From assembly GCA_900088475.1 (NCBI GenBank), contig FLMG01001956.1, positions 62,001-126,000 on the forward strand: 64,000 nucleotides of DNA, given 5' to 3'. Shown here piece by piece: positions 1-16,258 of this stretch (its first letter is position 1; the number at the start of each line of letters is the position of its first letter). A model generated the notes under the pieces. The model saw only the letters and a list, made by a program, of their open reading frames with translations, made no database searches and was not told the origin of the DNA. Origin of the DNA: Hyphochytrium catenoides (lineage: Eukaryota > Protista > Hyphochytriomycota). Position numbers and translations under genes: made by a program.

Positions 1-198
1 TTCTTTCTGTCCTTTTCCTTTCTGCCATCCACTCTTTGTAATCGGTTACTCCACTGTTCTCCTTCTTTCTGGGGCCCCTCTCTCGTTAAGATTGTCGTTG
101 CTTCTCATGGTCGTCGCTATCTACCATCTCTCTATAGAGTTTTGGTCCGTCGTCCTGGTCTCTCTGACCACCACTCTCTTCTTCCCCGGTATATGTAG

Positions 199-1684
199 TC
201 CACTACCATGAAGCTTTTGACAGGAGATGAGATGATCACAAGCGGACAAGCCTTCATCGGTGGCCGAAGCGTGACTTCCGACCAAATGGGAGTTAGGAGG
301 CTCATAGGCTACTGCCCCCAATTTGATGCATTGCTGGATCTTCTGACAGTCAGAGAACATCTGGAGCTCTTTGCAGCAATCAAGGGAGTACCACCTGAGG
401 AAGTAGAGCTGGTCGTGAGGGAGACGTTAGTGGACATGGACTTGACTAATTTTGAGCACAAGCTCACTCACACGCTCAGTGGAGGGAATAAGCGCAAGCT
501 TTCTGTGGGAATTGCTATGATCGGGTCTCCACCTGTTCTCTTCTTGGACGAACCGTCCACGGGTATGGACCCTGTGGCGCGAAGGTTTATGTGGAGCGTC
601 ATCGCGAGAGTGTCAACGGAGACGAAGGAAAGCACCGTGGTGCTGACCACTCACTCTATGGAAGAGTAAGTGGCCCCTTGATGTTAGATATGAGTATGCT
701 GCCAGCCCGGTGCCCTAACTCCTTTCTTTCTTTACACCTCTCTGCGGCTCTTTCCTTTCGTCCCTGTCCTCCCTTCATCCTCATCCTCGGCGGGCTTCTT
801 TTTTTCCCCACCTTCTCCCGCTGTCGCCTTTCTTTCTCTTTAAAAAATAGATGCGAGGCATTATGCAGCACCGTTGGCATTATGGTAGGAGGCAGACTTC
901 GCTGCTTGGGCTCGATTCAGCACCTTAAAGACAAGTTTGGGAACGCTCTGATGCTGGAACTTAAGGCATCTGACCCACCTCAGGGCGAGGTTGAAGCCCT
1001 CATGAACCAACTTCAGAAGGAACTTCTGTCCGCGTCGGAAGTCTTTGAGCTCTGTACCACTCTAGGGAAGCCTTCGCGCATCTCGCTTCTTCAGGGAGGA
1101 GCCTCCCAACTTCAAGGTCAGCTAAGCAGAGAGGGCAAAGTACCCGTGACTCTGTTTTGTACGTGGTGGATCAATCAAAATAACTTTGAGCTCTTGGCTG
1201 ACCGCCTTGAGAGGATACTGCCTGGCATCCAGCTCTTGGAGCGCCACGATCTTAAGTCTCGATGGCGAATTGAGAAGGGAGGCAAGAAGCTTGCTTACAT
1301 CTTTGAAGCTATCGAGGTAAGGAAGGTGCTTTTTATAGATAAGCTAGAAGGGCTAGGAAAGCTGATATTCCTTGTCATGGCCCCCTATGTTACTTCTTCA
1401 TGCTCTTCTCTTCATCGCCTCGAATTTGGCTGTGCACTCTGGACTCGCCGCTTGTTCTATTGGTCTTCATCGTTCTTGCCTCTCCCTCTTCTGTCTGCCA
1501 CCACCACTTCTTCTGGCCACTTACAATACTCTATCCGTAGGACCTTAAGAAGGATATCGCGATCCCTGAGTATTGTGTCAGCCAAGTCTCGTTAGAGCAA
1601 GTGTTCAATCAGTTTGCAGCTCAGCAAGATGAAGAGAAGGCGCTGGCACCGGGTATGATACTCGGTGCGGAGGCCAGCAGGTAG
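199..1684 (+). CDS. ABCA-subfamily transporter, C-terminal NBD2 and regulatory tail (5' part lies outside the window)
   Basis: Exons 199-665, 851-1316, 1541-1684 joined by GT-AG introns. Motifs [10 protein letters not shown] (end of Walker A), [45 protein letters not shown] and C-terminal [12 protein letters not shown] are ABCA hallmarks. Confidence 0.95.
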
Positions 1685-2338
1685 CAGCCCCACGAAGCTC
1701 ATAGAAATAAGGTTACTGTCGATAGTACTACCACCTTACCCGTACACATATTATAATGATAAGGTCTTTCATTGTTTATTATGTTCTTATTGCACGCCAT
1801 CATCTCTTCTTCCACATCCGAGACCTTGGTTAAGGAGTGGAAGGAGGAAAGAAAGCTAAACTATTTGGAAAAAGCCGTCGACAAAGCTGCTCTTTCCTTC
1901 ATCTGCGCTGGCCTTTCGAAAGGAAGCCAAACGACAATGTCTATACCTTGAGAAGTAAGCTATGCCCTTTGACATTCGGCACATCATGACCGGTGGACTG
2001 TGGACCTAGTTTATTGACTGGCCAGCTGTCCGGACAGGAGATTATTAACGTCCCAAAGACGGTCTTATCCAGAGTTATAGCCGTTAGCGACCATTTAGCC
2101 ACCTAATTGGATAAGTTAGTGGTCGTTACCGGGCCTACGAGACCGCCTTCTTACCATGATGGCTGATGGCTCTAGTAACGGGTTGGCTGTTGGCTTTCTT
2201 CAATGTACATACATGGTTTGCCCCTTCAACACCCGAGTGACGCTGCCAGGGAACTAGAAAGATGATTTGCAGCGGAGGACAGGTTTCGAGTCGGAAGACA
2301 TCTCTGTCTCAAGCAGTCTTGTTGGTCTGCGATTAAAG

Positions 2339-5300
2339 ATGGGGGGCACCCAATCGTGCTCTCTCGTGCCGGATCCCTCCTGCCAATGTTTGCCTGGCGA
2401 AGAGACAGTCCTTCCTTCAGGGACTTATCCTGTCTGCAGTGGATGCCATGACTTCTACCCAGTGGATGTATCGGAGTGGCTCATTGGCTTTGCAGTGGCA
2501 ATCAGCTTCATATACTTCATCACGCCAGGCTTTGCTTATCTCTTCATACGCTATTATGTCACACATTCCCTGCAAGATGTCTCGGTAAGCTTTCCCTGAT
2601 GAGAACCCCCGCGTTTAGCCTTCGGGTGTAGGGTTTAAGCGCACAGTAGGCTAATCATGGCTCCATTTATTCTACCTGAGCTAGCGCTTTCCTTTGCATT
2701 GCTCCTTACTCTGTCTCTCCAACTGCTTCAGCTTTACGCAACTCTGATATGTTTCTTGCACCGTTAACGTTGTTATCTGAACCATAGAAAAAAATGGCAA
2801 ACAGTCCATCCGCTACAGTGCCGACTATGCCAGCTCCTCCGCCTACCTACCTTACTGCCAGCGATGTCAGTTATGAGGTTCCTGGACCGAAGAGGAAGGG
2901 AGAGAAGACGCCGGAGAGAAGAACTTTGCTCTCGCAGATGACGGCCTGCTTCCGACCCTGCTCCCTCACCTGCATTATGGGTCCGACAGGTGCGAAGCAG
3001 TCAAAAGGGCAACGCTTCTTGCCGTGGTCTGAGTTCTCAATGCCATAAGTGGGTTACTATTGTAATTTCCTTTGTCTAAGGCGTGATGACACTCTTCATC
3101 ATTGACTTCTTGAGTGTGCGAGTTAGCTTGGTGCACTCAATCGTATCCAGTTCCTGACCTTTAGAACGCAAAGTATGTCTAACTACTTTTTGGTGGTTGT
3201 AGGCTGCGGGAAATCGACCACCTTGAATGTGCTAGCTGGCCGCACACGAGGCAATGGCAAGGTGACGGGCTCTATCATGCTCAATGGGTACAAGCGGGAC
3301 AAGTACTTTAAACGCGCCTCCGCATATGTCGAGCAGTTTGACAGTCTCTTCCCCTATTTGACGGTCAGAGAGACACTGCAGTATACCGCGGAATTCAGGC
3401 TGGACGTAGAGAATGAGGTGAAGGTAGCAAGGGTGGAACAGGTGAGATACTCCTGGGTAAACGCTGGGTTGTTTGCCAAGAAGCGTCGAAGTGCTCTCTT
3501 TAACTGGTTACATTGAAAGACCCCCCGCCCTTGCCTATCCAGAACTTGTCACATATCCACGCCTCTCTTTTGTCTTCTATGTCACTGCTGCCTTCCTCCC
3601 GCATTCCGATGGAGCGAAACCTAGATGAAACTGATTGCATGGGGAGTGGTTGCCCGAAGCCAGTCTTAATGCAAACTCCTATCCTTCCAACTATAGTGCC
3701 AGTGACCCTCTCCTGACTGCATTTTTAGGTCATTCGCCAATTGGATCTGGTTACGTGCGCAGACACAATCATTGGTGATGATAGTAATCCGTCCTTAAAA
3801 GGGATCTCTGGCGGTCAGAGACGGAGAGTGGCTGTTGGTCAGGAGCTACTGACTGCTCCTGCTCTTCTCTTTCTGGATGAGCCTACGACCGGGCTGGTAG
3901 GTTCCCACTTCCAATAACGTTACTTCTCTCCTTGCTCTATTTTCAACCAATATGCCTGGGTTCTTGGTTAGCCCTGCTTGTTACTGCTCGGGCTGATCTC
4001 TTGGCGTGTGGTCTGTGGAGCGTCTTTACCGTATAGTATTATTCCCATGTAACTCTTCGGTTCCCTTGCTGTCTGCTGCTCAGTCGTCAACTAACACACT
4101 CCCTACCGGGCAGGACGCTTTCGACTCATTGACGTTGGTAAGGATTCTCCGCCGCTTGGCGAATGAGTCTGGTACCACTGTCATCAGCACGATCAACCAG
4201 CCACGGCCAGATATATTCTCTCTCTTTGACAACCTGATCCTGCTTGTTAAGGGACAAGTAGGATACCTTGGCGGCATAGACGAAATTCCAGGGTATTTCT
4301 CCTCCCTGAGCCTCCATATCCCTGAAGATGCGAACGTAGCTGACTACATAGGTAAGTATAGTCGATAACTAGGTCTTACTATCGCTTACTTTTCAAGATC
4401 GAGGCCACTAGAGCATTTGACATCTTCGGCCCTCCCAAATTGCTGACGAGTGCTCTTTGCTTGCTGCCTTCTCTACCTTGGGGCTTAGTTGATCTCACCT
4501 ACGATCGCGGTGAAGGGGAGAACGACATCGTCCGCATGCTAGTGCAGGAGTATCAAACCTCAGAAATAAAGAAGCAGAGAGAGACGGAAGTCATGGAAGT
4601 CTGCAACCGCACGGCAGGAGATATCCCTGGTCCGGTGAGCGAGTTCTTTGAGCAGCGAAGAGCTGAGCTAGATGCCAAAGCTAATTATCGAGGCTCAAAG
4701 CTGAGTCAGTATTATGCGACTTACATTCACCGGCAAGTGGGAACGCTGCTCCGTCGCTCACATCGAAACTCATCGAGGACAAGTATCGTATTGCAACAGT
4801 TCCTCATCGCTTGCGCCCAGATGCTTTTCTTTGGGCTCCAGTTTCTTGGGATTAGACTCTATTCGGTGCCGTCCTTTGTTGATATCGGCTCCTTTGTGGT
4901 GACCGGAAGAGCTAAGGCATCATTCATGTACTCCATCATCAATGCGGTGTGTCTTCTGGAGGTAGACGTTATAGCAGAAGGTGGGTGTTGGGCTGTGACT
5001 GATTGAGACTTCCTGTCCCTCCGTCTTAGTCCTCTGCCTTGCAAAATTCTCCTCTACCTCCCAACTTTGCCTAGACTGGTGCACCATGAGCATATTTCTA
5101 ACCCCCAACTGCTTTCATCTCTCCTCTCCGAAACCTCACTCTTCGCCGTGCGAAATGTACGTTCAGCCTTTGTCGAAAAGCAAGTGTTTCTCAGGGAGCA
5201 TGCCAGCGGAGCCTACTCTGTTGTGTCCTACCACCTCTTCTGGATAATCAAGCTCGGTTGGCGTGGGATAAGGAATGGAGTCATTTATTCTCTCCTTTCC

Positions 5301-5849
5301 TATTTCTTAGGAGGACTGCAGATATCTCTCATTCAGTTCTTTACATTCGCCTTGGTGATGTGCATCATGTCTACCATTGGCTCCGCTTTGGCTCTTATCC
5401 TCGTGGTGGCCATTCCTGACGTGAGAGGCGCAGGTGACACTCACAATATTATCCTGGGCTTTATGGGCACCTTCGCAGGCTTCTTTCTTCTTCCGTCTCT
5501 CATTCCAAGCTTCATGCTTTATTATACGTACTACCTGAGCTTCTACCAGTATGCCTACCACGCGCTCGTGTGGAACGAGTTCAATTATGGCCCAGTCTAT
5601 AACAGCGGACAGCTCAGCGTCGAAGGCGATGTCAGTCCCGGCGCCGCCGTGGATCTGGCAAGCATTTTTCAAGTGATCTGCAACTTGAATCAGTGGGGAA
5701 ACATCCTACTCTTGCTAATCTACCCCATAGTCTTCCATGCTGTGGCGCTGCTTTTAAGTGCGCTAAACACTCGCCCAATGAGTTATTGGGCGGAAAATCT
5801 CACCTTCAAGCGGGGACTAAGAAGCTCTGTCACCCTAGATGGCGCCTAA
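2339..5849 (+). CDS. ABCG (White-family) half transporter with an extra N-terminal Cys-rich segment and TM helix
   Basis: Exons 2339-2584, 2788-2989, 3203-3441, 3729-3896, 4114-4351, 4489-4980, 5167-5849 (2268 nt, 755 aa, frame-consistent). Walker A GPTGCGKST, Q-loop AYVEQFD, signature ISGGQRRR, Walker B LFLDEPTTGLD, NBD before TMD, EKQVFLREHASGAYS and YAYHALVWNEF. Confidence 0.93.
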
Positions 5850-6119
5850 CAATGGGGCTGGGGACACTTTCGTTTACCTATCCAGGACAGATACTGACGG
5901 TAGTATCTCACACAGGATATGACTCTGTACGATCAATTATATTCAGCAGCTCGCACAAAGGTGGTCGAAAGGGAAGGCCCCGCCCACACATATGAACAAG
6001 AAGTACCATACCACCACGGGAAACACAAAAGGCATTCGCTAAATATTATACTAGACATTTCTCTACTGCCCCGACATGTGAAAATAATGTCTTATGGTCT
6101 CCGCTGATGCTTCATGTGC

Positions 6120-7136
6120 CTAAGCGAACTCAGCATAGTCTGCATGGCTTCGTCTGTCGGTTGATCTGTCGGTCACACTCCTATTGCAAGGCTCTGGAGG
6201 AGTGCAGGTTTTGCTGCAAGCTTCCGCGACAATGTTATGCAGTGTAATTGCGTCCACCACCATCTCCTTATCACTGACCAGCCTGTGGCCGTCGCCTTGG
6301 AGTTTAGAGAGATAAGAGGGATACACTATGTAGTCATAAAGGAAACCTCCACATAAAGAACCGATGCAGGGCCCAACGATGTAAACCCAGAAGCCGTTTC
6401 TGGGGCCAGGGATGGCAATAGTCCCCCATCCAGCCGCTGCAGCTACAATCCGAGGGCCGAAGTCTCTGGCAGGGTTAAAGCCTGCCTGAGTGAGAGGAGC
6501 CAATAGGCTGATCAGCGCTGCGACCGTAAAGCCAATGAAGAACGGAACTTGTTCCGAGGACGGTCGAGCAGCGTTCTTCCTATCAGTCAGGGAGCGAATC
6601 AGCACCATCAATATCATGGTGCCAAAAGCCTCAATCGCCATCGCGTGAGGAGGGGAAATATCTGTCTCGGCTAGCACTCCAGCCTTTACCACTTGGGGAT
6701 TAGGAAAGTATTCTCCGAACATCATTGCTGACAGGGTGCTGTTGTCAGCTCCTCGCTGAATGAAGTTCCGTGATTCATAGCGGCTGATCGCTGTCCCAAA
6801 AATCAACAGCACGCAGAACCCCGCAATAACGGAGCCCAAGAGTTGCGCGGACCAGTAGGGTAAAAGCTTCCATCTAGGGAATATCGATGGACAGGAGACA
6901 GCAAGAGACAAACTGACCGATGGATTCAAATGTGCCCCAGAGACATGTGCAGTTAAATAGATAGACAGAGCGACACCAAAGCCCCAGACCACCGCAACTT
7001 GCCACAACCCGACTTGAGCTTCCAGCGCCACAGCCGCTGCGACGGTCCCAGTGCCAAAGAAGGTGAGCATCCACGTCCCAAGGCACTCTGCTGCCAGTTC
7101 CCAGGCGATGACATTGATGCGACCCAACGAAGACAT
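6120..7136 (-). CDS. Major intrinsic protein, aquaglyceroporin (GlpF/NIP-like), intronless
   Basis: Single 338-aa ORF with AECLGT, SGAHLNPS, TQAGFNPARDFGPR and FWVYIVGP. The Asp after the second NPA box is the glyceroporin signature. About six hydrophobic helices. Confidence 0.96.
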   Translation of the reverse strand: MSSLGRINVIAWELAAECLGTWMLTFFGTGTVAAAVALEAQVGLWQVAVVWGFGVALSIYLTAHVSGAHLNPSVSLSLAVSCPSIFPRWKLLPYWSAQLLGSVIAGFCVLLIFGTAISRYESRNFIQRGADNSTLSAMMFGEYFPNPQVVKAGVLAETDISPPHAMAIEAFGTMILMVLIRSLTDRKNAARPSSEQVPFFIGFTVAALISLLAPLTQAGFNPARDFGPRIVAAAAGWGTIAIPGPRNGFWVYIVGPCIGSLCGGFLYDYIVYPSYLSKLQGDGHRLVSDKEMVVDAITLHNIVAEACSKTCTPPEPCNRSVTDRSTDRRSHADYAEFA

Positions 7137-7434
7137 GATACAGTGCCACCTAAATAACTGGAGGTAACACGCTGCTGTGGTGATGGAGATCTTTCTTTAT
7201 GGCAATGGGACGGCCTGATGTTGACGAGCAAAGTTATGAGATGGCCTTTCTTCTTGACGTAAAAGTAGCGTCACTGCCTCTGCCGCTTGCCTGGCTGTCC
7301 CTACCAAAGAGCCTCTTTTTTTTTCACTCTCCCAGCTTTCCCAGTCTTTATAATAGCCAAGTTCTTGAACCATTCATGTAGGTCGCTGCACTATCCGCCA
7401 TCTCACTTTAGCTCGCCTGGAGCTTGGACCCCAA

Positions 7435-7609
7435 GCTCTCTCTTTCTCTCTCTCTCTCTTCTCTCTGTCTCTCTCCCTCTCCTCTCTGTCTCTCTGTCTC
7501 TCCTCTCTGTCTGTGTGTCTCCTCTTTGTCTGTGTGTCTCCTCTCTGTCTGTGTGTCTCCTCTCTGTCTGTGTTTCTCTCTCTTCTCTCTGTCTTCCCTC
7601 TCTCTCTCT
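7435..7609. repeat. CT/CTGT-rich imperfect microsatellite (about 175 bp)
   Basis: Runs of tctc, tctgtc and ctctgtctgtgtgtctcct repeated; lies in the MIP/ArsC divergent intergenic region. Confidence 0.9.
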
Positions 7610-8766
7610 GGCTCTACAAGGTGACCTTTCTGTTGCAGGTACAGCTACTTCAGCACTCGTCTGATAAATCTCTGTTTATAAAAACCTTCGTACACCGTCG
7701 TACGATGTACACCCTCCCAATCTTATAGACTGACGGTACCTGTACCAACGAACAGCGTTGGTAGAACTAACTCCTGCAGGAACGCCAGCACACCCTCCGC
7801 CCCGCACTTTATCAGAAGAAGGTGCGAAATCTTGCCTAACCAGGGAAAGGTAAATTTCAAAGGTTTGCAACAAAGTCTGTGGTCTTCTCTATCAGGTTTC
7901 CAGACATGAAACCTACAAGGGAACAATAGTTCAATGACCCGCCCACAATCAAGAGACAAGAAGATGGGTAGTCGAAGAACAACACTGACCGTTGACTCTA
8001 GTCATCTTGTTATTGACGTATTCTGCGATGATGGAGCCATAATGGGGTGAACTATGGCCCATCTGCCACAATTAGCGTATTACTGGTAGCCTTTATACCG
8101 TCCATCGAGCCTGTCGTCCTTCAACTTTATGATACTGTTCCAAAATCATAGCCGGATCCCTAAAATCGATTCATGGGTCTGCTGAGATTCCAACAGACCG
8201 AGAGGCTTACAAGGGTGAGGGCTTTGGGTCGTTACGAATCTACAGCTGAATCTGTGCAAAGCAGATTGTAGTCGTTAGCAACTCTTTAGAGCCTGCATGG
8301 CCAGTTGACCGTTATCTGCCAAGAGGTCTCATGTCATCAGAAGATCAGAAGAGGTCCCTGCTCTTGATTTCTTGATTGGACAGATGACTCTGTCTAATTT
8401 TCTATGAGAAAAATCCGAGTTAAATGAAATAAGGCCCTTATTTATTACGGAGTATGTCAAGATAAATTTCCTAGACTTACTCTTCCTACAAGTAGTGTCT
8501 CTACAAAAACTTATTCAAGTACAATAAGTGTATGTCTCGTCTTCTGGGTGAGAGGACTTGGGTACGGGGATGCTGAACACTCGTTTTATTGATCTTCTGC
8601 CACTGTCCGAGAGAATGAGCCCGCGATGATAGACGAGCATCACGAAAGGAAGGTGCTTGTTGTCAATTAGTAGAAGCTTCCGCCCTCTCTCAAGAACAGA
8701 GCAGAATTCTTGACCACTTGTCACACCTCCAGATTGGCATTGGGAAGACAAGAAAGACGCTCCACG

Positions 8767-9756
8767 ATGGACCAAAGACATCGACTCCGAGACTACGTTG
8801 AAGTTATTGCGGCTGAGAGTTTGACAGCGAGCATTCCGGAAGAGAGGAAGGTATGCTAAACGCCAGAAGCTAAAGCTTGCCTTCAATTTGAAAATAGGAA
8901 CGCCAGTGCCATGTGCTGCTCGGGTGCCTCCATGACGAATGTGTAATCTGCTGCTCTTGTGTCTCCCATGTCCCCGACTCAACCCTATCCAAGGTCATCC
9001 TTGACCAGCTGGCAGAGTATGTCGCCAGAAAGATTCAGAAGGACGAAGAAATCAAGTTGATGTGGGTCTGTACTCATAACAGTCGGAGATCTCAGCTCAG
9101 TCAGATTTGGTGCCAGGTGAGCAGCTGGTAGGCCTCGAAGGAGGTGGAAGTAAAGCCTTAACCGACTCTGGTGTCTAAAGGTTCCTTTTTCCTTGCACCA
9201 CAAACCAGGTATTGGCCCTGCATTACGATATCCCAAAGCTCTCTTCTTTCTCTGCTGGAACCGAGGTAACGTCTTTTCATCCTAATACTCTGGAGCCACT
9301 GCGTGATAGCGGGATAAGAATCAACAGCACTTCTGGGGAGTCAGCCAACCCCAAGTATGAGATTATCTTTGATCTCGGAAAGTCTGGTCAAGGGAGTCTG
9401 ATCTGCTTCTCTAAGCTGATCAAAGACGAGAGCAACCCGAGGGATAAATTCGCGGCTATAATGACGTGCACGTAAGTCACTTGCCTGAGCTTTTGAAAGC
9501 ACCTGATAACTTGAGCTGTAGCTGAAGACTCATTGCGTCACTACGATTCTCCTTTGTATTGTGCGTTAGGAGTGCCGATCGCGGCTGCCCCATCGTAAGC
9601 GGCGCTGAGAAGCGGATCGCCCTGCCCTTCACCGATCCCAAGAGCGCGGACGGTACGCCCGACCAGGCGCAAGCCTATGCACGTACCTCCCGACAGATCG
9701 CTCAGGAGCTTGCCTATGCTTTTGAGAAGGCAAAGCAGATGACTAGTAGGGCATAA
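8767..9756 (+). CDS. arsC: Arsenate reductase, LMW-PTP fold, thioredoxin-coupled ArsC type (CTHNSRRS subfamily)
   Basis: Exons 8767-8850, 8994-9116, 9209-9471, 9570-9756 (657 nt, 218 aa). IPEERK|VILDQLAEY, P-loop WVCTHNSRRSQ (CX5R), SAGTE, NPKYEI, resolving pair MTCTSADRGCP (CX6C), and FTDPK. Confidence 0.88.
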
Positions 9757-11163
9757 TACAGTGTAGTAGAGCTCTAGGGAAACTCGAGTATCAAATAATG
9801 GAAGAAGCAATATGCTGGGGACTCGCCGGTTTGCGAAGGCGGGTGCCTCTTTGCCGGGCTTGCAATAAGGTGCATTCCAGCCTCGATTTGTGCTTCGAAG
9901 TACAGCTGGCTCATCTGTCCGCTCGTGTCATAGCGGCAAAGTCAGGCCAACAGTGGTACCAGGAAGAAACATGCCAACGTGACGTTAACGAGTCCCCTCT
10001 TCAACAGACGTCGCAGAATTCGAACTCAACAGACGTCGCAGTATGACGGCATGGCTCGAACGGTGGAGATTGTCTCCTTGGTGTGCAATTGCAGTACTCC
10101 CTCGAGACTACGGTCAGGGATCCCGCTCCCACTCTCATCTTGCGAACGTGCCATCTCACCAACAGCGCTGCTGGAGTCTCAAGTCACGCTGGGATATCTT
10201 CCATCCATACAAAAGTTGTTAATGAGACTTTCCCTGGGTGGCGTCTTCGGTCGCTGTTTCATCGTTTGTTGGATGGTGAGAAAGATGCAATCACCCATTG
10301 CAACCTGGACTACCTGGACTACGCGAGAACGAGGACAAAGGAAAAGGAAAAGAGGCGATGAGACCGCTAAGCACCAGTAGCAGCATAATGCAGGAGCAGC
10401 AGGAGCTAGCAAGAACCAGAAAGCCAAGGCAGCAAGAGGGAGCGACGATAGTTATAAATAAATAAGAAAGAAGGAAGTTGAAGATAGAAGCTGGGCAATG
10501 TCTCAAGTCGTCGTCACCCTTGCATCCGTGGCGCTTCGCCATTTATTGAACTTCTGTAGTTCCCATAAAGTCGCAAGTACAACGCGAATTGGTAAGTATC
10601 AGGAGAATTGCCGTCCCTCCATGCTTTTGCTCTAGGCCCCTCTCCCTTGAAAAAGCGATGTCCTTGTACTTGTACAGGTTACTCGTGTTACGTACTTGTA
10701 CTTGTACTTGCGACCAACACAGTATAACTCTGAACACAACTACCCACTCAAAATGCACTCTGGACTGGGAGGGCACGGAGAGATTTGTTCCTAGTACAAA
10801 GAGCCCGATTATTACCAAATACTCTGTAGTCGACAGTACTTGTACTTGCTTCTACAGCTCATGACCTCATGACCCGTCTGATTCATCGGTCTAGCGGTAA
10901 ATCGGTAGATCGGCAAACTGCGCTTGAAGACTAGCTATCGGCAATGCTTCCGCAGAAAAGCATTATTTAGAAGGGTGATAATGGGCCCATATCGAGGGTT
11001 TTATGACTTATAACAAGAGCAAATGAGGGCAAGGGAGTTCGTGGATGGTGTCAACATGCGTAGGCCTCCAACCGGCCTGGACAACGACCAATATAGTGCA
11101 CAACAACCCTTGCCACTTTCTTGAGTAGGTATTTCGAAGTAGGGGCAGCCTTCCTTCGGTGCC

Positions 11164-14100
11164 ATGCACTCAGAGCAACGAGCGGAACAGCGGGACTTTG
11201 ACCTGCTCTCAATGCTCCGCAATCACTTCCGAGAAAACTACACCGATGAGATCATCGTCCTCCTCATCGGCGCTGCCACACTTATGTACCTATACCGCAG
11301 CTCGTACAGCAAAGGAAGAAAGCTACCCCTTGTGTCACACCTATTGAGTGGCCGGAAGCTGCCTGGTGAGGTAGGAGTGGCCTTCTTCTCACTCCTTTCG
11401 TCCTTCTCCTAAAGCGTTTTCACTTCTAGAGCTTGTTCCTCGCTAAGGGCACCTTTGAAGGCTACATGTGGAAGAAAGGTCACCAGGTCAAGAGCTGGCG
11501 CAGACGGTGAGACCCAAAATAAGCGAGGAAGATGTGCTCCTGGGTTCGCTCCCGTCTGCTTTTGAGCAGTCTCAGAGCAACGATATATGGTATCTACTCA
11601 CTACTTCCCTTTTCCCTATCGTAATAGGTACTTTATCCTAGACGCGAACAACGTGATGCGCTACTACACGAGTGCGGAAGAAGCACACAGCAATGCTTCT
11701 CCCAAAGGCTCAATGGTGGTCGCCAAGGCTTCACCGTGGGACAAGAAACAGAACGGGCTCGTGCTCTATAGTGATGTGAGAAGGACTTCAAAAAGGCGAA
11801 CTCATCTTTCCCCCGCTGTCCTCTTGCCGTGACCGTATCATTCCTTAGCTTTCCATCGTCTTTTCCGCGCAGCCTGTCTTCAGGTGGCGCTTGTGTCATT
11901 CCCTGTTACTGGTGTTGGGACTACTAGTAGCTTGTCCGACGTGTGCGCTATTCTTTTGCAGGGATTACGTAGTCCTAACAAAGTGCTATCTTTTTACCCT
12001 CCCTCTGAGCAGTTGGGCCAGAGCCTCTATCTGTACTGTGAGAACAAGACCTCGCAGCGAAAGTAAGGATAGCACTAGTAGGGAGATAAGCAGAAAAGTG
12101 GTAGTGGAACGAATAGAGTTAAGGATTATCTGTCGGTCTAGTCTCTTGCTGACAGTCGCCCTTCTATCAAATTGATCAAAGGTGGCTGACTATCTTTGAG
12201 ACACGACAGCGAGAGACCATTCTTGACAATAGGGACGAGGTTGTAGATCTGAGCAAGGATCTAAACCTCACTAAACACAAAATAGATGCGCAGGTGAACG
12301 ACTTTCGTCTTACTCGCTTCTGCTCTTCGGGTGACACCTGTTCCACATTCGCTCTGATGGTTTTTGTCGGTACAGGTGTCTTCTTGTTCTATCGTATCCT
12401 AATTGAGATTGGGAAATGCTGACTACGGACTTGTAGATCCTAAAAGTCAAGATTACGGGCCAGCGAGATAAGCAGCGTGACAAGCAGACATACGTAGTAA
12501 TGAAGGTACAGGGCTGCTTTCTCTTTGTATCCTGTTGCTTGACATCTGACTGCTAATGTTTGACGTCAGTTTAAGTCAGACTTGGACGATTCATTACAAG
12601 AGGGAACGTCCGTCGGACAGTCATCAACGAAGAAAGGCACAGACACATTTGAATGGAACGAGAGCTTTTCTTGGTCCTTCCAGGTCGGGGCACTTGTTTT
12701 CATGCAATATGCACGTCGGCCTGGGGCCTTCCCTTTTACATAAGTAATAGTTTCGCACGCTTCAATAATGACTAACATCTGCTTACCTACGGATTGGCTG
12801 ACTCTAGGATCACGTCAAAGATGATAACAAGGAGAGCTCTGCGGACAGTGATGACAAAGCTGTTGTTGTCCGAGCCCTGCCCGATACGTAAGTGTCATCC
12901 AGGCGTCTCCTTTGCGGTCTGTCACCTTAGCCTCCTTCATTGCTCCTGCTTCTATTTCAGGGTTGCTTTTTACACTTTCGGCGTAATAGTCGTCGTATGA
13001 TGCGCACGCCTCACGCTTTTTCGTATGCACACATCGTCGCGCTTTTTTGTCTAAACATCACCATACAAGTGCTTTGCTATCTTGCCCTATCTTGACTGTG
13101 ACTTCGCCTGGTGACGACGCTCCTGCTTTCAGAATGGTTTGTCAGCTCTGGGAAGTCGCGCTCTTTAAAAACAGAAAGGTTGGGGCTGCCCGGATTGCGT
13201 TGTATGACATGTTTGGGTTCCACGGCATAGAGAAGGCCGACACGACGCTGACCTGCCCTGGTACATGCTTAGCAGATTTTCTCGAGTCGTTCGACCTGAG
13301 TTTCACTCGTTGCTGACCTGAGTTTGATTGACCGAACGTCAACAACTTTATGGAAAACCGAAGCTATGGCGTTTTCTGAACCGATTCTCTTATCTTTAGT
13401 CATGACGAAAGAAGGAGAGCATCTAGGGGTGGTGCAAGTTCAAATACATTATGAAGGAACAAAAGCTACAGGCAAAGAACCCTTCGTTGTCTCAGCGCCT
13501 GCTGATCGAGTGAAGTTGAGGACGGGATTGGTAAGACGGGGTTTGTCTACATCTTGCTTGGACTTCAGAGTAAACGTTTACCTTCACCCTCCCCGACAGG
13601 TACTGGAAGGTGTCAGCAGTGCAAAGGAAGTCTTCGACCTGCTTTGGTGCGTACGCCTGGTCTCGGACCTTCTTTTAACCACTTTCGCCTGCTTGAGCTT
13701 GACAGTCTAGACCGATCACTGCTAAGTATCACCTTCATTCTCTTCGTCAGGTCGGACGAGGCTGGAGTTTTCTGGCAAAAATATTATGACGTCCGCGGTG
13801 ATACTGAGGTGACGGAGCAGAAGTGGGAGAGCTCCTCCAAATATGGCGGGTTAACGCGAGAAGTGGTTTGCAGATCCCCAACAAATGCACCCATAGGCCC
13901 ACCCTCTACAGTCGTGGTAACTTTTTGCAGACTGTTGTTTATGGTGTTTCTCGTATTTGAGACATCCTTTTTGGATCAGCTTCTTGCCTTTAATGACCTC
14001 CGCCCGGAAACATGATATCTTTGAGTTTGACAAGCACTTCTGGTCATAGTCGTTGAACTTTAAATTTCAGTCTTCAGTCAACACGACGGGGACTCGACCT

Positions 14101-15955
14101 TTTATACACAGTCGGCATCCCAGTAACATTCTCTGGACGCATGTTAAATTTGCCCGTCACTTTCGGTTGTTGTGTTGTGTTCAGACAGGCGGTTCTCAGT
14201 GTCTCTGCTTTGCTCTACCCTTTTCATACTGTTTGTTTAGACTATCCAGCAACACGCTGTCCTCAGTGAAGATGGGAAGAGTCTAGTCGTAGAGGTAAAG
14301 ACGGTAAGCAGAACCTGCTTCGTGTGTTGTCCGCCATACTGAGGCGAAGCAGAGCCTTCGATAAAAGTTACATCCTGTTGGCTCCGTACTTCGGTACTCC
14401 ATTCTAACGCTTCCCTCCTTTTTGTTGTTGTTGTTGATCCATTGCAGACCCTTCACGACATACCCTACGGCGACTGCTTCCACGTGAGTGCTGTCCTCTC
14501 CAGAAGTTTTATAGTTCCATGGTTCACTGCACTCTTTAGCCACCCATGCTAGTTTCGGCCCCTTTATACACTTATTTGAGAACTAATGCTGTTTGCCGTC
14601 TCTTTTACCATCTATGATATACCGGAAATGTGTCCACGTTGGCTATATGTGTAGATTGAAGTCATCTACGTTTACTCCACAACTGGAGATAACGTCGTTA
14701 GTGCAGATGTCTTCCTTGCGATACCCTTTTCAAAGGGTTGTCTCTGGAAGGCTAGGATCATTGCCAACACAGAGGCACAGGTAGGTCTATAATATGAACT
14801 CTGCTAGTTCGCAGTTCCTCATTGCATCACAACTGCCGCCAGACAGCACTCGTCTGTTGCTTGATGAGTTTGTTGTAACCTTTGGCCTAGGTGCCAAATA
14901 TCCTTCGTCCGATTCTGCAGAAGTGGTCATTACATCTCCTCTGTTTCGCATAAAGCGGACACTTACTCCTCTACATCATTATTTGTCTGACCTTGCCGCT
15001 CTGTATGCAGTATGGCGAGTCAGTGGACCTTATCTTCTCGTTGGCGAGGTCCCATATCAAGGAAGGGCCCAAAGAAGGTGGCGACGGGAACAGTTCTGGA
15101 TCCACCTCCAATTCTCAACGGATTCCGAAGATCGTGTCTAAAGTTTCCAAGCTCATGGATAGTGATATCGCCATAGAAGAAGTTTTTGAGAATGAGAGGT
15201 CAGCCGGAAGCACTTTAAGCTCTTTTTTAGCTCTTATGTTGAGTTCTGTCGTCCACGATTTCAAGAATACAAGTACCATCGACTGTGGTCGGGCAAGTTT
15301 CACGGGCCTCGTGCTGCATTCTCAGTTCTCATTAGTTTCTTCCTATCATGTCGTCTGAAGGTACAACCTCGTCACTGGTTGGGGCCCGGGACATCTCTTC
15401 CCCACTGATCGTCGTCGGTTCACAAACCGTATGGGGGACAAGGAGGTGGACATGCAGAGCATCAAGCTTCCAGAGAATTGGGTCTGGGAATCAGATTGGA
15501 AGGTGGACACCAAATATACAGACTGCGACGAGCAAGGTAGGAGGCAATGCCCTTATATGAGCCTTCGGCTGCTTGCAGGACTGGTAGATGGAGACCAGGG
15601 GACTATCGTTGCATCAGGGTTAGGGTAGTAGAGTGAGGAAGAACGTGAGCTAGGTGTCGGACTAGGAGAGACGTATCCTTTCTGTCCGTAAAAATGCGGC
15701 GTCCCTCCCCGTGACCAAGAAGGCGGAAGCCGCCAAATTTCCCGTCACTGGAGTTCCTTTGAGCTTACCTTGTGTTTAACATTTGTAGGATGGAGCTATG
15801 CAAGCTCCTTTCCACGATTCAATGAGCATTTGAGAAGAGGCAAGTCTCGTGCCACGAAGGGAATGTCAGTAGTCCGACGAAGGAGGTGGGTCCGAACATT
15901 AATGCGGATGCCAAATGCCAGTGGGACTGAAGGATCCAGTGCCATCTCGGGATAA
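11164..15955 (+). CDS. Multi-exon membrane protein with TM-PH-C2-VASt(StART-like)-DysF architecture
   Basis: N-terminal TM IIVLLIGAATLMYLY; PH FEGYMWKKGHQVKSWRRR|YFIL; C2 ILKVKI..TYVVMK..FEWNESF..VGAARIAL..GVVQVQI; VASt WQKYYDVRGDTEV..TREVVCRSP..LHDIPYGDCF; DysF EVFENER|YNLVTGW..LPENWVWESDWKVD..GWSYA..VRRRRWVR. Some exon limits are approximate. Confidence 0.85.
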
Positions 15956-16258
15956 GAGAGCTACGACGCGGAAGTAATCGGAAGGAGTCGGAGATTTGTG
16001 GATAGTGATAGAGCTAAAGAGAAGAGAGTTCACCAGCGACTATTTTATTTGTTATATATCAACATGACCAAACAAAGATACAGAGTGACCTGCGTGCCAT
16101 TATCGCCCCTCATTTTAGTCAGAATGTACCGCCAACCACTTATACTCCTCTATAACTTGTGGGGGACGTGGATAGCACCAAGAAGTTACCTTAATGGAGC
16201 TCCACACAGGACCACGCCACAGTCGTGCATTTGGGGCCTCATTAGTGAAGGGTCGGAT

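Follow-up and report, generated by a model that had tools for sequence, protein, structure and literature searches.

In Sinorhizobium meliloti, which carries the genes aqpS-arsC, arsenate is reduced by ArsC and arsenite exits downhill via the channel AqpS (PMC9454679). Here we analyze a divergent pair of genes from Hyphochytrium catenoides (Hyphochytriomycota), located in a stretch of 64,000 nucleotides (GenBank assembly GCA_900088475.1, contig FLMG01001956.1, positions 62,001 to 126,000 of the forward strand), hereafter called the window: one gene encodes a GlpF-like channel of the MIP family and the other a protein resembling the bacterial arsenate reductase ArsC, hereafter the ArsC-like protein. 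The likeness to aqpS-arsC consists in a reductase gene beside a MIP gene that replaces the ArsB or ACR3 pump, and the same reduce-then-exit logic is proposed for the window. The differences are several: the host is eukaryotic, the genes are divergent and do not form an operon, neither ArsR nor ArsH lies near them, their transcripts are separate, the reductase belongs to an uncharacterised LMWP subfamily and has introns, and the channel comes from a different clade, one of GlpF-like proteins. Co-transcription in an ArsR operon does not apply to this pair, which consists of divergent eukaryotic genes with no ArsR in the 64 kb.

Other described systems share part of this design. The ArsC enzymes of pI258 and Bacillus subtilis (TIGR02691) have in common with the ArsC-like protein the LMWP fold, a CX5R(S) nucleophile loop, distal cysteines spaced as CX6C and an Asp-Pro general acid, whereas the window protein is about 85 residues longer and has the loop CTHNSRRS instead of CTGNSCRS. 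The yeast ACR1-ACR2-ACR3 genes, too, bring together an arsenate reductase and an As(III) exporter in one eukaryotic cluster, but the putative window reductase has the LMWP and not the rhodanese fold, and its exporter is a channel and not the ACR3 antiporter; ACR2-like genes adjoin relatives of the window MIP in Pythium insidiosum and in two further loci (L001 and L174). Moreover, Wu, Song and Beitz reportedly described in 2010 actinobacterial fusions of an aquaglyceroporin channel with an ArsC enzyme. These likewise couple a MIP to an LMWP-type reductase, whereas the window has two separate genes.

According to a 2022 review, eukaryotes are without homologues of prokaryotic arsenate reductases (PMC9454679), so that rhodanese-fold enzymes (ACR2, HAC1) would be their only means of reducing arsenate; ACR2-type enzymes are the only ones named in a review from 2021 on eukaryotic microbes. 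In the searched literature we came upon no account of a eukaryotic LMWP ArsC; the first-pass annotation of the window knew of no description of this arrangement in a protist, and the searchable literature yielded none either. From the sequences and their genomic associations we consider, with a probability of about 0.6, that the two genes act as a pair in arsenate detoxification, on a reduce-then-leak principle.

Gene structures and catalytic residues

The gene pair, the spacer and the exons of the ArsC-like gene are the following (coordinates of the window; L003 and L170 are eukaryotic contigs described below):

6120-7136, minus strand: MIP channel gene, a single intronless open reading frame (ORF) with an ATG start, 338 amino acids (aa)
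7137-8766: divergent spacer, presumed promoter region of both genes, 1,630 bp
about 7436-7615, in the spacer: CT-rich microsatellite of about 180 bp with periods 2, 19 and 21 (Tandem Repeats Finder)
8767-9756, plus strand: ArsC-like gene, 4 exons, 218 aa
8767-8850, plus strand: exon 1, 28 codons from ATG to AAG, followed by GTATGC; opens the N-terminal helical extension that is typical of the family; matches bacterial homologues and the L003 orthologue at their N-termini
8851-8993, plus strand: intron 1, 143 nt, GT..AG, phase 0; same position in L003 and L170
8994-9116, plus strand: exon 2, 41 codons; P-loop C54-T-H-N-S-R-R60-S61
9117-9208, plus strand: intron 2, 92 nt, GT..AG, phase 0; same position in L003 (there GC-AG) and L170
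9209-9471, plus strand: exon 3, 87 codons plus 2 nt; ends just past C156
9472-9569, plus strand: intron 3, 98 nt, GT..AG, phase 2; splits the T157 codon inside CX6C; L003 has it at this position and in this phase, L170 lacks it
9570-9756, plus strand: exon 4, 1 nt, 61 codons and stop; C163 and D179-P180

Both gene models and the spacer agree with the first-pass annotation, which had placed an aquaglyceroporin on the minus strand (start 7136) divergent from an ArsC-like gene on the plus strand (start 8767); the two start codons are 1,630 bp apart. The spacer (7137-8766) contains no ORF with a Pfam match and no Rfam family, and a hidden gene or RNA inside it was rejected, as nothing in it is recognisable by Pfam or Rfam. 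Its microsatellite is situated upstream of the MIP gene, about 300 bp from the start codon.

The coding sequence of the ArsC-like gene was joined from three ORF fragments in different frames, and after splicing it has 657 nt in frame, encoding 218 aa plus a stop. In support of the exon model, members of a bacterial family of about 205 aa match the spliced protein along the whole of its length: phmmer scores with members of 199-236 aa reach 185 bits, collinear and including the N-terminal helical extension, and tblastn gives 39-49% identity from residues ~5-25 to ~208-216 of the ArsC-like protein. The full spliced sequence was compared locally, and the large-database, Pfam and structure work used exon 3 alone or bacterial proxies.

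The Cys triad and the Asp of a thioredoxin-coupled ArsC are encoded. The P-loop C-X5-R-(S/T) is present as CTHNSRRS (C54..R60-S61), the distal cysteine pair as C156-X6-C163 and the DP motif as D179-P180; both distal cysteines are invariant in 30 members of the family, and the DP motif is also invariant. In a HMMER alignment made via L004, a bacterial homologue 44% identical to the window protein, C54/R60, C156, C163 and D179 map onto C10/R16, C82, C89 and D105 of B. subtilis ArsC (1jl3). The CX5R loop, the CX6C pair and the DP motif of the first-pass annotation, there equated with Cys10, Cys82, Cys89 and Asp105 of staphylococcal ArsC, are exact.

The ArsC-like family in bacterial arsenic operons

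Searched with exon 3 alone, a database of 1.84 billion representative proteins gave 325 relatives at E <= 0.001, mostly of 200-215 aa, which are named "protein-tyrosine-phosphatase" (NCBI) or "arsenate reductase" (JGI). In an alignment of 30 members the columns of C-T-x-N-x-R-R-S, C...C-P and D-P are invariant, and all 19 family-invariant residues are present in the window protein. Further features of the family are an internal insertion and, at the N-terminus, a helical extension of ~45 aa. An AlphaFold model of one bacterial member (P0123, 39-51% identical to the window protein; pLDDT 92.6) has as its 13 best PDB matches LMWP arsenate reductases, including D. indicus ArsC2, pI258 ArsC and B. 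subtilis ArsC, with target TM-scores of ~0.7-0.8; the TM-score against protein-tyrosine-phosphatases of low molecular weight (LMW-PTPs) is ~0.6, below that of the ArsC matches.

The genomic context of the family was studied by scanning one genome per bacterial species. At least 597 species have a gene of the CTHNSRRS family, and the gene context was taken from the best 80, mostly Bacteroidota, with Planctomycetota, Acidobacteriota, Myxococcota and others; neighbour gene names in these 80 loci were checked with Pfam and NCBIfam. Within 3.5 kb of the ArsC-like gene, ArsR is found in 56/80 loci, ACR3 in 35/80, the arsenite methyltransferase ArsM in 22/80, DUF6428 in 19/80 and a MIP in 7/80. Because its neighbours in these loci are ArsR, ACR3 and ArsM, the CTHNSRRS family is a component of ars operons in bacteria. 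Domain fusions also occur, to the ArsA ATPase (P0190, 811 aa) and to a GNAT acetyltransferase (P0139, 365 aa). Taken together, residues and gene context suggest that the family present in at least 597 species genomes under the name "protein-tyrosine-phosphatase" is an arsenate reductase.

Some further observations were made on these bacterial genes. In 19 of the 80 species (loci L010-L089; 9528-10001 in L004/L005) the next gene upstream of the ArsC-like one encodes DUF6428, a family without assigned function, and the usual order is ArsR-DUF6428-ArsC-like-(ACR3 or MIP); DUF6428 is probably an unrecognised ars-operon component. Another member (P0166, 410 aa) has its LMWP domain fused to an N-terminal region of ~200 aa without a Pfam match. 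On the Niastella-like contig of P0123 (JGI 3300071325) what comes after the ArsC-like gene is not ACR3 but a metallophosphoesterase and a PHO4-type phosphate transporter, a neighbourhood that hints at a link with phosphate/arsenate uptake.

The channel and the eukaryotic history of the pair

The window MIP has the Pfam MIP domain (8.8e-45) with two NPA boxes (NPS71 and NPA221), and its score on NCBIfam TIGR00861 is 164.4 bits, just below the cut-off of 171.25. Its best solved relative is E. coli GlpF (1fx8, 7e-42). In the alignment with 1fx8 the selectivity filter is W51/I209/A218/R224, against W48/G191/F200/R206 of GlpF, with Trp and Arg retained, Ala in place of Phe and Ile in place of Gly; the filter Ala is invariant in the MIP clade. 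A W-(I/V/A)-A-R filter is one that we take to resemble that of plant NIP-I channels, and plant NIP-I channels conduct As(III). The C-terminal tail of the MIP, about 65 aa, is not conserved among the eukaryotic relatives, and a role of this Cys-rich tail as a metalloid sensor was rejected because neither the tail nor its cysteines are conserved among them.

The closest database proteins to the MIP (57-64% identity) are bacterial, Chloroflexota or Dehalococcoidia where named, together with one from Pythium insidiosum. In two Chloroflexota-type loci the MIP is overlapped by a few bases by an upstream LMWP ArsC of another kind, composed of Phosphatase-like_N plus LMWPc and with the loop CVHNAGRS. 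This second kind of LMWP ArsC ("type B", as opposed to the "type A" of the CTHNSRRS family) was counted in 80 metagenomic MIP loci: it adjoins 14 of the 22 MIPs closest to that of the window and 1 of the 58 more distant GlpF-like ones.

Trees of both proteins, proposed in the first-pass annotation as a check, were computed. In a careful MIP tree rooted on a distant GlpF-like group, eight eukaryote-type MIPs form one clade (100/99) of which the window MIP is the first branch, and this clade together with P0061 nests inside a bacterial group with ars-linked MIPs (99/99). P0061 (463 aa) had been considered as a MIP-ArsC fusion and was rejected, as it has the MIP domain only; no fusion of the two families of the window was seen among the examined matches. 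The tree of the ArsC-like proteins, built from 100 sequences, joins the window protein to L003 and P0122/L170 (98 SH-aLRT), and its bacterial backbone is poorly resolved. Among the bacterial ars-linked MIPs there is a second, separate and well-supported GlpF-like clade (L106, L112, L134, L135, L147, L149 and L160, JGI contigs of 1-1.8 kb), with a support of 96 SH-aLRT for the seven rows and 99/99 for the four retained in the rooted tree; its members are possibly protists, in which case this type of channel would have been transferred into eukaryotes more than once.

The MIP clade is embedded in arsenic gene clusters across several eukaryotes. For example, in P. insidiosum (JAKCXM010000491.1, L002, ~8430-12950) the MIP lies in an apparent cluster with two HC-X5-R-GP rhodanese genes (ACR2/Cdc25-like) and an arsenite methyltransferase; one rhodanese gene is head-to-head with the MIP, and the methyltransferase, which matches PDB entry 5evj at 4e-64, is convergent with it. 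No Pfam hit was recorded for the rhodanese protein beside the MIP. In L001 a rhodanese gene homologous to those of P. insidiosum is also head-to-head with the MIP, and the best PDB matches of its product are Arabidopsis CDC25/ACR2, Cdc25A and Leishmania ACR2. Two Logan contigs (L173 1-6699 and L174 1-3451, from SRR23945519 and SRR23945645) have the order rhodanese, GAPDH, a 99-aa ORF, MIP, ACR3 and a pogo-type transposase, and their MIP is 63% identical to that of the window. The presence of GAPDH beside arsenic genes recalls the bacterial GAPDH-ArsJ arsenate pathway. A tblastx comparison of window positions 1-16000 with P. insidiosum matched only the MIP itself, without wider synteny, and a rhodanese gene was not found in the window. 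No description of MIP-centred arsenic clusters in oomycetes was found in the searched literature.

The ArsC-like gene also has eukaryotic relatives. L003, a 1.36-kb contig from a public run, encodes a 223-aa orthologue with 53% identity, and all three introns of the window gene are found in it at the same position and phase; the counterpart of intron 2 (463-532) is a GC-AG intron with the donor GCATGG. Three metagenome contigs with 38% GC content (L170-172) have introns 1 and 2 in common with the window gene and lack intron 3, and a fourth eukaryotic member, P0312, comes from a large NCBI assembly. The window gene matches its neighbouring genes in GC content and in GC content at third codon positions (GC3). 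Because its three introns are common to a relative and its base composition is like that of its neighbours, the ArsC-like gene is an old resident of the eukaryotic genome, and we read the MIP gene, in view of its eukaryotic clade, as an old resident too.

In L170 (1-2890, a JGI metagenome contig of 38.5% GC) the ArsC-like gene is head-to-head with an ACR3 gene and tail-to-tail (convergent) with ArsH. The ArsH call has 343 bits on NCBIfam against a curated cut-off of 292; the ACR3 gene is cut by the contig end and was recognised by Pfam SBF and by its 48% identity with a bacterial ACR3. Two eukaryotes, then, place the ArsC-like enzyme beside an As(III) exporter, and the two exporters, the MIP in the window and ACR3 in L170, are of unrelated kinds. 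These arrangements indicate that a bacterial LMWP-type enzyme, as judged from sequence, was domesticated in eukaryotes and recruited beside As(III) exporters.

As for the origin of the pair, the first-pass annotation had proposed a module of bacterial origin. Both genes are in fact of bacterial type and would go back to bacterial ars operons, though of different operon types, but their arrival as one unit is not supported, since the bacterial partners of each are of a different subtype. Type-A ArsC-like relatives pair with ACR3 or with an AqpZ-like MIP of only 26% identity to the window MIP; the MIPs of type-A operons (L004 and six others) are the AqpZ-like ones, 24-29% identical to that of the window. 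Likewise, the LMWP ArsC beside the closest bacterial relatives of the window MIP shows a local match of no more than 30% with the enzyme of the window. A co-transfer of the two genes as one operon was rejected, as the combination of subtypes seen in the window occurs in 0 of the 160 fetched loci (80 type-A, 80 MIP). Intron content differs as well, with none in the MIP gene and three in the ArsC-like gene.

Selection acting in the eukaryote, and no joint import, would instead have assembled the pair or kept it together, because the ArsC-like gene has introns in common with a relative and the base composition of its surroundings, and because the MIP falls in a clade of eukaryotes with an oomycete among them. 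An ars-linked MIP would have been acquired by an ancestor of the window lineage and of oomycete-like organisms; a type-A ArsC-like gene would have been acquired separately by some eukaryote, and then spread or inherited; and in this genome it would have come to lie where relatives carry an ACR2-like reductase. We put forward tentatively, at slightly less than even odds, the joint proposal that an intron-bearing clade of LMWP-type reductases exists in several eukaryotes (at least the window, L003, L170-172 and P0312), head-to-head with an As(III) exporter in the two with enough flanking sequence, and that in the window the LMWP gene fills the slot beside a conserved ars-type MIP that in an oomycete belongs to ACR2-like rhodanese genes, a non-orthologous displacement inside a eukaryotic arsenic cluster.

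Proposed mechanism and competing explanations

In the proposed mechanism, arsenate would enter the cell via phosphate transporters, and in the cytosol the ArsC-like enzyme with its LMWP fold would reduce it. C54 would attack arsenate, and C156 would release arsenite through formation of a C54-C156 disulfide; by analogy with thioredoxin-coupled ArsC, C163 would shift the disulfide to C156-C163, where thioredoxin would reduce it, and D179 would act as the general acid. As(OH)3 would then leave down its gradient through the GlpF-like MIP. Such a module would guard against arsenate and not against external arsenite. A co-regulation of the two genes from their common spacer would be plausible.

Several points weigh against this detoxification pair. 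MIP channels are bidirectional, and the channel could equally raise As(III) uptake. Full-length bacterial relatives of the ArsC-like protein reach 37-42 bits where the curated cut-offs are 174 and 215 (TIGR02691 / NF010053), exon pieces of the window gene reach 16-17 bits against curated ArsC models, family members fall below the Pfam LMWPc gathering score, and NCBI names the family protein-tyrosine-phosphatase. The designation "bacterial-type ArsC" holds as far as the full Cys triad and the Asp of the thioredoxin-coupled enzyme are concerned, but not as membership of the curated family; by sequence, the ArsC-like protein is placed in an uncharacterised sister family outside the pI258-type ArsC. 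No experimental study of the CTHNSRRS family was found in the searchable literature. Moreover, the exact pair occurs in this one genome only, its bacterial relatives belong to different operon types with no demonstrated ancestor, and no ArsR, ACR3, ArsH or ArsM was found in the 64 kb. The 1.6-kb spacer is about average at this genome density and gives no evidence of a shared promoter, and divergent pairs were noted as frequent in the window at the first reading.

Some of these points would also fit an adjacency by chance, in which the MIP would be a glycerol/water channel of general use and the ArsC-like protein would do other work, as a phosphatase or redox protein, under separate regulation: a single genome with the exact pair, an unremarkable spacer, the name given to the family and bacterial partners of other subtypes are all compatible with it. 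We regard this account as unlikely, because both families are independently linked with arsenic genes, in bacteria as well as in four further eukaryotic loci, and because the distal Cys pair, invariant in the family, is needless for a phosphatase. Moreover, by our estimate the chance of an arsenic-related immediate neighbour is about 1 in 1,000 per gene (~18,000 genes, of which ~ten are arsenic-related). An arsenic module whose enzyme is not a plain As(V) reductase is improbable too. Such an enzyme might act on another oxyanion or an organoarsenical (e.g. antimonate, methylarsenate or an arsenylated metabolite), or use glutathione/glutaredoxin in place of thioredoxin; the scores of only 26-42 bits against curated thioredoxin-ArsC and glutaredoxin-type LMWP models, the extra N-terminal helical region and insertion, and the co-occurrence of DUF6428, ArsM and GNAT fusions, pointing to a wider arsenic chemistry, would agree with this. 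The full C10/C82/C89/D105-type set is nevertheless invariant, the nearest solved folds are As(V) reductases, and the commonest partners, ArsR and ACR3, are the minimal inorganic-arsenic set.

Much less credible is a joint import from one bacterial aqp-arsC operon, with a later inversion of one gene relative to the other. Bacterial operons with ArsC and a MIP do exist, in two forms, and both window genes are of bacterial type, but the low identities between subtypes and the 0 of 160 loci reported above argue against it, as do the presence in the MIP clade of an oomycete without an ArsC-like neighbour and the intron content of 0 versus 3. Finally, both proteins find their best database matches in bacteria, as they would in the case of bacterial contamination or an assembly artefact. 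To this we give next to no credence: the ArsC-like gene has three canonical spliceosomal introns common to another eukaryotic contig, GC and GC3 are like those of the neighbours, both genes sit in a 64-kb intron-rich window with ABCG and PEX14 genes, and the stretch is present in three sequencing runs of the organism.

The detoxification pair is thus preferred among these readings. The first-pass description of a "reduce-and-efflux module" survives in part: the pairing of reductase and channel recurs in bacteria (a MIP in 7/80 type-A loci, an ArsC beside 14/22 of the closest MIPs) and in analogous form in other eukaryotes, but it is not one imported unit. The functional logic of a reductase plus a channel is already known from bacteria. 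If our reading is true, the review claim that eukaryotes have no homologues of prokaryotic reductases would be wrong, pseudofungi would have MIP-centred arsenic clusters of a kind that we did not find described, and the locus would be a natural case of eukaryotic genes clustering by function after separate horizontal transfers.

Around the pair, the GC content of the window is uniform (~48-52%) and long ORFs are scarce, as fits an intron-rich eukaryote. On the other side of the MIP gene there is an ABCG-like transporter gene (~4440-5849, plus strand), convergent with it, whose C-terminal ABC-2-type membrane domain stops 270 bp from the MIP 3' end; no arsenic link was found for this gene, nor is there synteny between it and the ABC gene that lies near the MIP of Pythium. 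A soil metagenome run contains 9% of the sampled words of the stretch.

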